DNA of 42,613 nucleotides from Octopus sinensis. Its lineage: Eukaryota. Below the pieces are notes generated by a model, which saw only the letters and a list, made by a program, of their open reading frames with translations, was not told the DNA's origin and made no database searches. Positions 1 to 3,100 of this stretch are shown here, piece after piece. The position numbers and the translations under genes are program-made. Within the stretch, counting starts at the first letter, position 1, and each line of letters begins with the position of its first letter. The stretch covers positions 1-42,613 of the forward strand of contig NW_021835044.1 of the NCBI RefSeq assembly GCF_006345805.1, written 5' to 3'.

Positions 1-98
1 AATTAAGAATGGAACCTGTTCTCAGTCATTCACACAAATAATATATCTCAGGTGAAAGTAAAATTTATAGAAATCAATTATAGTTATTTTATACTCAC

Positions 99-149
99 CA
101 ACAGATTCTACAATCGTCTTGACTGCTTTTTCTTCAAACTTTGGACACA
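99..149 (-). CDS. Micro-exon U1: [17 protein letters not shown]
   Basis: Same splice sites; 51 nt; phase 1 is the only open frame in this unit. Confidence 0.8.
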
Positions 150-3100
150 CTGAAATAAGAATTGGAAATTAAGAATGGAACCTGTTCTCAGTCATTCACA
201 CAAATAATATATCTCAGGTGAAGGTAAAATTTATAGAAATCAATTACAGTTATTTTATACTCACCAACAGATTCTACAACCGTCTTGACTGCTTCTTCTT
301 CACACTTTGGACACTCTGAAATAAGAATTGGAAATTAAGAATGGAACCTGTTCTCAGTCATTCACACAAATAATATATCTCAGGTGAAGGTAAAATTTAT
401 AGAAATCAATTACAGCTATTTTATACTCACCAACAGATTCTACAACCGCCTTGACTACTTTCTTTTCAGACTTTGGACACACTGAAATAAGAATTGGAAA
501 TTAAGAATGGAACCTGTTCTCAGTCATTCACACAAATAATATATCTCAGGTGAAGGTAAAATTTATAGAAATCAATTACAGTTATTTTATACTCACCAAC
601 AGATTCTACAACCGTCTTGACTGCTTTTTCTTTACACATCAGACACACTGAAATAAGAATCGGAAATTAAGAATGGAACCTGTTTTCAGTCATTCACACA
701 AATAATATATCTCAGGTGAAGATAAAATTTATAGAAATCAATTACAGTTATTTTATACTCACCAACAGATTCTACAACCGTCTTGACTGCTTTTTCTTCA
801 AACGGATATTCTGAAATAAGAATTGGAAATTAAGAATGGAACCTGTTCTCAGTCATTCACACAAATAATATATCTCAGGTGAAGGCAAAATCTATAGAAA
901 TCAATTACAGCTATTTTATACTCACCAATAGATTCTGCAACCGTCTTAACTGCTTTTTCTTCACACTTTCGACACACTGAAATAAGAATTGGAAATTAAG
1001 AATGGAACCTGTTCTCAGTCATTCACACAAATAATATATCTCAGGTGAAAGTAAAATTTATAGAAATCAATTACAGTTATTTTATACTCACCAACAGACT
1101 CTGCACCCACCTTGACTGCTTTTTCTTTACACATCGGACATACTGAAATAAGAATTGGAAATTAAGAATGGAACCTGTTCTCAGTCATTCACACAAACAA
1201 TATATCTCACATGAAGGTAAAATTTATAGAAATCAATTACAGTTATTTTATACTCACCAATAGATTCTACAACCGCCTGGACTACTTTCTCTTCAGACTT
1301 TGGACACACTGAAATAAGAAATGGAAATTAAGAATGGAACCTGTTCTCAGACATTCACAAAAACAATATATCTCAGGTGAAAGTAAAATTTATAGAAATC
1401 AATTACAGTTATTTTATACTCACCAACAGACTCTGCAACTGCCTGGGCTGCTTCTTCTTCAGACTTTGAACTCTCTGAAATAAGCATTTCAAAGTTTTAT
1501 ACTTCATAGTAAAATTTCTTCGTCTCTTTTAATAATCTATATTCCATTATTGTGAGGCAATCATATCATCAATAGTCAATTGGTGACCACTATGCTTTCA
1601 GTCAACACTTTCTAATCTGTTGCTATATAATAGTTCAATATTTAGAATCACAACAAAATAGGCAAAACTTTCTAAATCTCATCTTTTTCCTAAGACATCG
1701 TATATGCTAATCTAGCAATTCTGAAATTATCTCATTTAGTTATCACTTCATAACACTCTTTTTCTCTTAGTTTTGTCTTTCCTTTCTTATGTCTGTGCTG
1801 GTCATATGACATGCCATTGTCCTCTCATCTCGAACCTTCACTAACCAATATTCTTCTCATCTTCTACTAAATTCCAGTCTCAACCAAACTGGTCTTCAAA
1901 ATCTGGCCACAAAGGCATGACACATTGCTTCAGGAAGGATAAACATACCCCAGCTCTCATTTTTATATGTTACTGTTGGTAATCTTTAATCTTAACTGTC
2001 CACATCACACTTCACCAGAATACCACCTGATTCAGGAAATATCTGAAGATATTTCAATGTCATTCATCCTCTTTAATAAGCAGCTTTTTTTTTTCTAGGT
2101 GAGCAATGATTAGTTCTACACAGGTGGAGCAGAAAGTGATAACAGGTATCCTGAAACATTACATTTGTATAAAATCTCCTTAACTTAAAACTGTTTATCT
2201 ACACATTATTGCAAATGAGTTATATCTAAAATGGGACACTAGAATTCATTCTCAAGAATATATAAGACTCGCTAAGAGTCAGATCCTTAAACTCTCAGTT
2301 GAGATTTTGTCATTGAAATTCTTACATTACAAAGCTGACTGTGATGTTGTAGGAAGTACTGTTGTCCTTAATTATCAGTTTCCCAAGATACTTATAAATC
2401 ATTAACCTCATATAAAAGCTGACAATTGAATATAAAAAAGTTGATGTTTACTGATGGGACCTTGGAGATTTATTGATATTTCATTTATATTTCAGTAAAA
2501 TGTACTAGTCTTATGTTGCAGACAATACTCTTTTGATGTGGGACAGGTTTCCTACTTGGATAAAGACAATATTCAGTGGGTGTAGTCATGGATATACTAT
2601 CTAAGAGAAAAGACACCTGGGACATCTTTTATCATACATCTGTCAGATTATGACAGATCTGGGTCGATACAACATTATTCCATTCCATAATGTCATGTGA
2701 CAAACAGACAGATCATCAAATCATATTCTTACCAACTCTCCTTTTGCTTTTTATAAATGTTTTACACTTGGGGCATCTTATAAGTTGAAGTTTGCTACAA
2801 TCTTCACATAAAACAGTATGTGCACAGGGTTGTAACTCCATGTTGGCTTCATTCACTTCACAAAGCATACATCTGTGGAAAAAAACATAAAACACATCTT
2901 ACCTATAACATTCATTTCTAACAAATATTACATGTTTGTTTTATGTTTACAGTACAGAATATTATGAAACACCAGACTGACCAGAGTGAGGGGCATGGCT
3001 AAGTTGTTAGGCTGTTGGACTCATAGAGTAAAGTTGCGGTTTCAATTCCTGGACAAGGCGATGTGTAAAGTTCTTTAGCAAAACACTTCAGTCTAGGTTT

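Follow-up and report, generated by a model that had tools for sequence, protein, structure and literature searches.

Architecture of the tandem array

The left end of a 42,613-nt contig of Octopus sinensis (NW_021835044.1, RefSeq assembly GCF_006345805.1; this whole stretch is referred to below as the window) carries a tandem array of very short exons on the minus strand, in a gene that encodes ankyrin repeats (ANK) and a RING finger. Tandem Repeats Finder (TRF) reported a single array at positions 1-1488, with a period of 166, 9.0 copies and 92% matches. Read on the minus strand, each 166-bp unit comprises a 51-nt exon, preceded by TTTCAG and followed by a 115-nt GT..AG intron that starts with GTGAGT.

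The donor GTGAGT and the acceptor TTTCAG are identical in all nine units, every one of which is in phase 1/1. Eight of the nine exons are 51 nt long and the remaining one is 48 nt, the sole indel in the array exons being the loss of 3 nt (one codon) in unit 5. The phase-1/1 frame is the only one open in nine of nine units, the other two being stopped in most of them. Every exon adds 17 residues that begin with a VCPK(C/S/F)-like pattern, and the nine peptides are all distinct. An earlier sequence-only reading of this DNA had described the same anatomy, with nine 51-nt plus 115-nt units, invariant splice sites, a single one-codon indel and nine different peptides, and TRF and the unit alignment confirm it in each respect. 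The array is cut by the left edge of the window, so that the true copy number is at least nine; no further copies of the 166-bp unit were found in the window beyond 1-1500. The elements of the array, all on the minus strand, are as follows.

1..1488: tandem array of nine 166-bp units (exon plus intron), from TRF and unit alignment
1424..1474: array exon 1, 51 nt, phase 1/1, of an ancestral-looking type common to other paralogues
1258..1308: array exon 2, 51 nt
1092..1142: array exon 3, 51 nt
926..976: array exon 4, 51 nt
763..810: array exon 5, 48 nt, one codon deleted
597..647: array exon 6, 51 nt
431..481: array exon 7, 51 nt
265..315: array exon 8, 51 nt
99..149: array exon 9, 51 nt
1309-1423, 1143-1257, 977-1091, 811-925: first four of the eight complete 115-nt array introns
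648-762, 482-596, 316-430, 150-264: last four of the eight complete 115-nt array introns
1-98: partial ninth array intron

A probable linker between the RING and Death domains

A protein search with the conceptual RING-plus-array product gave matches in Octopus proteins only. In annotated proteins of O. sinensis, O. vulgaris and O. bimaculoides, the 17-residue units come directly after the RING, and the order in these relatives is ANK, RING, one to five units and a Death domain. Pfam places RING (PF13920) and Death (PF00531) on either side of the units, and two Death-domain exons follow the array in every full-length relative. Since the relatives carry their units between the two domains, the window array would likewise be an inter-domain linker, and not the C-terminus of the protein, where the sequence-only reading had put it. 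No Death-domain match was found inside the window, and the Death exons of this gene should lie to the left of position 1.

The remaining exons assigned to the gene have ordinary sizes (140-360 nt), and the window model returns Ank and one zf-C3HC4_3 domain (E=9e-8) in Pfam. They are listed here together with the intron that leads into the array, all on the minus strand.

1475..2732: intron from the RING exon to the first array exon, collinear with the RING-to-linker intron of O. bimaculoides (locus L002) and O. sinensis (locus L004)
2733..2872: RING-finger exon, intact, C3HC4, Pfam zf-C3HC4_3 (PF13920)
7622..7800: exon before the RING exon, ending in LFLPPQ; tblastn identity of 87-90% to proteins P0005 and P0040, with splice sites read
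9570..9782: ankyrin-repeat exon, ending in ILDE; 5' boundary approximate
14584..14943: upstream ankyrin-repeat exon, assigned to the same gene by homology only; 102-bp period; duplicate at 23835-24296
15729..15905: upstream ankyrin exon, by homology only; duplicate at 25055-25231

The RING exon (2872-2733) ends in AGA GTT G followed by gtaaga, which is a phase-1 donor matching the phase-1 array acceptors.

The gene belongs to a family of ∼85 clusters, every one of them from O. bimaculoides, O. sinensis or O. vulgaris, and the only Pfam families found across them are Ank, zf-C3HC4_3 and Death. Names such as 'MIB2-like' that are attached to its members come from automated annotation and are explained by the shared Ank plus C3HC4_3 RING portion. 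The protein is not an orthologue of Mind bomb, to which the sequence-only reading had likened it: its domains are limited to ANK repeats, a single RING and a Death domain, and neither of the Mind bomb-defining domains, MIB/HERC2 and ZZ, was found when P0001, P0012 and the window model were scanned with Pfam, or in the precomputed Pfam lists of the ∼85 clusters. Literature searches returned no description of the Octopus ANK-RING-Death family or of its arrays, and the family thus appears to be undescribed in the searchable literature. Public RefSeq models already contain the array exons.

An AlphaFold2 model of P0001 was built on a shallow nine-sequence alignment. The predicted local distance difference test score (pLDDT) is ∼75 for the RING and ∼85 for the Death domain. 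Residues 182-237, which correspond to the units, have pLDDT <50 and no secondary structure. A zinc-binding repeat was rejected, as CxxC is kept in only four of the nine window units and in none of the five O. vulgaris units. The most economical reading of the model is that the units would form a flexible tether of variable length.

Unit usage in annotated transcripts

The evidence on isoforms comes from RefSeq computational models of relatives, in repeats where short reads map ambiguously. Isoforms X5, X8, X10, X13, X16 and X17 of O. sinensis LOC115225502 differ only by units (CPKF, CPRC, CPKC) and a further linker exon. At L004, the gene models P0040 and P0037 differ by two units, and in the O. 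vulgaris models P0063 and P0071 the RING exon is joined straight to Death exon 2. All exons from the RING to the last Death exon share phase 1, so that every combination of units stays in frame. The earlier suggestion that any subset of exons could be spliced in frame holds in this respect, and its combinatorial part is consistent with the computational isoforms that differ by units. On these grounds the array units are very probably real, symmetric cassette exons, and the window copy would be spliced as modelled.

Copy number and exchange among related loci

Four loci were compared at the DNA level: L001 (O. vulgaris), L002 (O. bimaculoides), and L003 and L004 (O. sinensis). The arrays of O. 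sinensis LOC115225502 and P0020 were studied as protein only. L004 is the closest relative and is collinear with window 826-8768, with a substitution divergence of ∼3% in two introns (36/1257 in the intron at 1475..2732, and 152/4692). Its array has four units, all four of which are used in model P0040, with Death exon 1 located ∼2.2 kb and Death exon 2 ∼5.8 kb downstream of the array, 3.5 kb apart. One L004 unit (22482-22517) has an in-frame 15-nt deletion that leaves a 36-nt exon, ECPKCKEKVESF, and is included in the model. A degenerate TAACCC-type 40/80-bp array is found at L004 29608-29825, just downstream of the last Death exon.

The L001 array has five units, with the Death exons coming after it, and shares with L004 a 3' array boundary of the form ...GGTTCCATT[CG]T[TA]ACATTTCTTTC. 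L002 has two single-copy linker exons separated by introns of ∼2 kb, and the window unit aligns to one of them and to ∼90 nt of its intron at 74% identity. L003 is 97% identical to window 2149-4864. In this region of L003 (26655-26800 and 27375), the RING exon is frameshifted, reading ...CEDCSKTST before a stop, and similarity to the window stops at window 2149. Further on, at L003 32270-36750, lies a C2H2 zinc-finger gene that contains 53 tandem copies of an 84-bp repeat. Across the loci, unit copy number is 0, 1, 2, 4, 5 and at least 9.

Similarity changes partner along the window, with 1-1804 matching L001 and 2149-6117 matching L003. A recombination breakpoint was located at window 1804 (= L001 9684, L004 21986), 316 nt upstream of the array. 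Downstream of it, in the array and Death exons, L001 and L004 are 87-94% identical, whereas upstream, in the ANK-RING part, identity falls to 70-82% and the RING types differ. Modules have therefore been exchanged between paralogues, and the mosaic pattern reflects real shuffling of the 3' modules within the family. A chimeric assembly or a gene fusion was considered for the switch from L001 to L003 and rejected, the RING-to-array intron being collinear with intact genes in L002 and L004.

Origin of the 166-bp unit

In the array consensus, the whole intron aligns to the intron that follows Death exon 1 in L001, donor against donor, and the 51-nt array exon corresponds to the 72-nt Death exon 1 less two internal deletions. 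Homology also links the intron upstream of the array to those that precede Death exon 1 and the single-copy linker exons (L001, L002). The 5' end of window array exon 1 matches Death-domain exon 1 of O. bimaculoides, and part of its peptide recurs in the first unit of the O. sinensis paralogue P0020. The unit therefore consists of a shortened copy of Death exon 1, ∼100 nt of its downstream intron and ∼10-14 nt of its acceptor, and the array arose from it by simple tandem duplication. An origin from the CPxC end of the RING exon, which had been suspected from the CPKC motif and a similar donor, was rejected because of the same whole-intron alignment.

Exon and intron diversity

Relative to the consensus, 47 of 456 exon nucleotides are substituted, compared with 18 of 1018 intron nucleotides (Fisher p=2.6e-12), which reproduces exactly the counts made by hand in the sequence-only reading. 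Variable columns are 25 of 51 in the exon and 14 of 115 in the intron (p=7e-7), and pairwise diversity in the window array is 0.173 for exons and 0.033 for introns. The variable block corresponds to exon columns 1-48; the first 14 and last 12 nt of the intron are invariant. The same contrast is found in the O. vulgaris array (0.080/0.022) and in the O. sinensis L004 array (0.096/0.029), making exons 3-5 times more diverse than introns or single-copy flanks. The exon hypervariability is thus genuine and recurs in two arrays besides that of the window.

The sequence-only reading explained this pattern by a diversity-generating module, in which diversifying selection acts on the exons, the introns are homogenised by unequal crossover or conversion, and splicing is possibly combinatorial. 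In its full form, the model would have splicing yield many protein variants with distinct specificities, as an innate-immune-type repertoire. The excess itself, sharply bounded by the splice sites in three arrays, is in keeping with such a module. The substitution pattern within the exons argues otherwise. By the Nei-Gojobori method the window exons have proportions of non-synonymous (pN) and synonymous (pS) differences of 0.173 and 0.174, giving a ratio of non-synonymous to synonymous divergence (dN/dS) of 0.995, in a test of low power with ∼11 synonymous sites. This ratio does not exceed neutrality, which had been named at the outset as the result that would count against diversifying selection. 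The claim that most exon changes alter the amino acid is correct as a count (21 non-synonymous and 6 synonymous events), but the resulting 78% equals the neutral expectation of 77%. Synonymous sites are also more variable than intron sites (6/11 versus 14/115, p=0.002), an inflation that selection on the peptide does not directly explain, although hitchhiking within a 51-nt exon could lift dS along with dN. Unless synonymous variants do hitchhike, diversifying selection on the peptide would account for part of the excess at most.

The proposed homogenisation of the introns is likewise not borne out by the measurements. Intron divergence is 0.022-0.033 within arrays (0.033 in the window, 0.022 in O. 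vulgaris, 0.029 in O. sinensis L004) and 0.028-0.036 between them, close to the 0.029-0.032 of single-copy introns and flanks between the window and L004; upstream of the array, L001 and L004 diverge by 0.025. Exon diversity is 0.080-0.173 within and 0.116-0.156 between arrays. Within-array concerted evolution was rejected on this equality of intron divergence, no fixed differences separate the window and O. vulgaris arrays, and none of the three arrays gives any sign of ongoing array-specific intron homogenisation. The array introns, whose splice signals are invariant, resemble ordinary DNA of the same age. Mutational bias arising from CpG or base composition was also rejected: the transition/transversion ratio is equal in exon (19:8) and intron (10:4), only ∼3-4 changes are CpG-related, and every base type varies more in the exon.

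Much of the exon diversity is old and mosaic, and recurs across arrays and paralogues. Some 10 exon columns (1, 2, 13, 15, 25, 30, 33, 40, 44 and 48) are polymorphic in more than one array, the same alternative bases occurring in two or three of them, and 46 of the 105 pairs of informative sites in the 51-nt exon do not pass the four-gamete test. The site that decides the second Cys of CPxC has three alleles (Cys/Ser/Phe) in several arrays. This site, and the persistence of identical polymorphisms across arrays and species, would fit a diversity-generating module, as would the many annotated isoforms that vary in unit usage.

The Death exons add to this side of the argument. Between L001 11782-11853 and L004 25171-25242, Death exon 1 differs at 10 of 72 positions versus 29 of 741 in the adjoining intron, with 9.5 non-synonymous and 0.5 synonymous differences. 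Death exon 2 (L001 15387-15602, L004 28796-28999) has pN 0.165 and pS 0.137. This suggests that the Death domain evolves rapidly, possibly adaptively. For the linker itself, however, the predicted disorder is not that of a binding surface, and the O. vulgaris array includes two identical exons and a broken one. Taken with the neutral dN/dS and the unremarkable intron divergence, this makes a diversity-generating module unlikely as the explanation of the array.

Interpretation of the array

The interpretation that we consider probable is that the window array consists of symmetric cassette exons encoding a variable RING-Death linker in an Octopus-expanded family, that it originated by tandem duplication, and that its exon excess is mainly the result of short-tract exchange. 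In this scheme, each exon would lengthen the tether between the RING (E3 ligase) and the Death domain by 17 residues. The shared phase would let units be gained, lost or skipped with the frame intact, and the outcome would be tethers that differ in length and sequence among loci, species and transcripts. With dN/dS near 1, the linker peptide is under little amino-acid constraint. We infer that the exon excess is caused mainly by exchange among paralogous linker exons: the exons of a fast-evolving C-terminal module would trade short tracts among many diverged paralogous copies, and such conversion, invisible in the near-identical introns, would introduce both kinds of difference, synonymous and non-synonymous, into the exons. 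Selection for diversity could add to this.

Several observations weigh against this interpretation. The isoforms are the computational RefSeq models described above, with their ambiguous short-read mapping, and the Death exons of the window copy fall outside the window. In O. vulgaris, two 1-nt deletions break the frame of the unit at L001 10512-10560, leaving 49 nt, and the annotated protein skips this unit; individual array units may be drifting. In L003, the RING exon is frameshifted and no array lies within 9 kb. In the window, read-through of the RING donor (2718-2732) gives GKNMI and then a stop, so that this stop, 5 codons beyond the donor, would yield a RING-terminal protein; the O. 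bimaculoides model P0010 indeed ends just after the RING by donor read-through (...VGKNTLC). This suggests a short RING-terminal isoform produced by intron retention, beside the long Death-domain isoform. The absence of stops, which the sequence-only reading had cited, is real in nine of nine units but is expected by chance with P=0.19-0.38; it is not significant and was discarded as evidence of selection. Finally, the explanation by conversion is indirect: donor tracts were not identified, and conversion does not account for why paralogous exons outpaced their introns in the first place.

Many of these observations would also be expected if the array were a neutral intronic minisatellite of decaying pseudo-exons, included in mRNA never or only sporadically, with an open frame left over from recent duplication. 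On this explanation, the transcript either stops after the RING exon or splices past the array, as in P0010 or in P0063 and P0071, which skip all linker exons. The frame-broken O. vulgaris unit, the insignificant lack of stops and the dN/dS near 1 are all in keeping with it, as is the degenerate state of many family members, with a RING frameshifted or truncated in L003 and L004. Neutrality, however, predicts equal diversity in exon and intron, whereas a 5-fold contrast with edges at the splice sites is seen in three arrays; the splice signals are invariant, and the closest annotated relative, L004, uses four of four units in its model. Decaying pseudo-exons are, on this balance, a very improbable account of the array.

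Comparison with known systems

We class the array with tandem cassette-exon linkers, here in an undescribed, Octopus-specific ANK-RING-Death family. Its nearest functional analogue is the hinge of human IgG3. In IGHG3, a short exon and a short intron are tandemly duplicated to form a Cys-containing flexible inter-domain linker, and the repeated hinge exon is present in 1-3 copies among allotypes, which alters linker length (PMC4202688). The octopus array is similarly a duplicated short linker exon plus short intron with variable copy number. The IgG3 hinge exons, however, are nearly identical to each other and constitutive, whereas the octopus units are all different, number at least nine and are annotated as cassette exons.

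The micro-exon genes (MEGs) of schistosomes also have symmetric tiny exons, splicing-generated variants and fast evolution (PMC4350168). MEG products are secreted, carry a signal peptide and are encoded mostly by micro-exons that are not tandem copies of one unit; in the octopus protein only the linker is built of tiny exons, all of them derived from one 166-bp repeat, and the domains are those of an intracellular-type ANK-RING-Death protein. The spider silk genes Flag and MaSp2 combine near-identical introns with more variable exons in iterated units (PMC3563967). Silk exons are long and of low complexity, with variability due to slippage, unlike the octopus exons, which are 51 nt, are not simple-sequence and vary by point substitutions with an intron-like transition/transversion ratio.

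Exactly one exon per cluster is used in Dscam, guided by docking/selector RNA pairing. Drosophila Dscam has tandem arrays of duplicated, diversified alternative exons (PMC1397879). Unlike in Dscam, several octopus units (2-5 in series) are included together in annotated proteins, and no docking/selector complementarity of the Dscam type was found: the array unit and intron gave no stable RNA fold (z=+0.66), and the array intron had no inverted partner, the only inverted repeats being weak AT-rich 20-mers. No Rfam family matched the array intron either. The idea that the intron is conserved because it forms an RNA structure, serves as a docking site or editing complement, or gives rise to a small RNA was rejected on this basis.

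In MHC (major histocompatibility complex) class I and II exon 2, exon diversity, including synonymous diversity, greatly exceeds that of introns, and motifs are mosaic and shared across species. There, the variants are alleles that a single exon has within a population, and dN/dS exceeds 1 at binding sites, while the octopus case concerns tandem copies within one gene with dN/dS near 1. The leucine-rich repeat (LRR) and tetratricopeptide repeat (TPR) arrays of Ectocarpus ROCO/NB-ARC genes, and the WD40 repeats of Podospora HNWD genes, are reshuffled repeats in putative immune-type genes. They build folded binding domains in which surface positions are under positive selection and concerted evolution is clear, unlike the octopus units, which are a predicted disordered tether with dN/dS near 1 and no within-array homogenisation. 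When HNWD-type concerted evolution was tested, neither of its two signs, homogenisation and dN/dS above 1, was found.

Other features of the window

An internal segmental duplication of ∼2 kb or more relates window 14000-16000 to 23270-25340 and includes two ankyrin exons. The open reading frames (ORFs) at 15621-15932 and 24947-25258 have identical translations, and the ORFs beside them differ very little; the ANK region of the gene, or a neighbouring paralogue, was therefore duplicated very recently. On the minus strand at 10386-11370, within the intron that separates ankyrin exons, several ORFs of 60-140 aa overlap one another and have the look of retrotransposon fragments, as judged by eye only. 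An interstitial telomere-like (TTAGGG)6 is present at 20339-20374. Microsatellites of the (TA)n, (TG)n and (ATAC)n types are very dense throughout the window (e.g., 12460-12600, 15988-16215, 17043-17222, 35012-35203 and 40687-40928), and GC content is low (27-41%). This combination of dense microsatellites and low GC accounts for many spurious long ORFs in the six-frame list.

Biological significance

A known feature of coleoid genomes is a small number of large, lineage-specific gene expansions. The ∼85 Octopus-only ANK-RING-Death clusters point to another such expansion, in a family whose modular, same-phase 3' region is visibly shuffled between paralogues. The array offers a clean natural example of one 166-bp tandem duplication making new cassette exons, and a compact system (51-nt exons, 115-nt introns) in which to ask why exons diversify several-fold faster than introns.

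A more far-reaching possibility is that the ANK-RING-Death arrays and the fast-evolving Death domain act as a repertoire generator, combining germline variation in copy number and sequence, combinatorial splicing of individually skippable linker exons, and exon diversity that selection actively maintains while the flanking DNA evolves neutrally. We hold this to be quite improbable. If true, it would represent invertebrate immune diversification built on an intracellular E3-ligase/death-fold adaptor, with a logic like that of Dscam-hv, FREPs and Sp185/333. Should splicing and copy number show no variation among tissues or individuals, the array would be a tidy but ordinary inter-domain linker of variable length. 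If they do vary by tissue or individual, the array would bear on how invertebrate immune and cell-death signalling diversifies.

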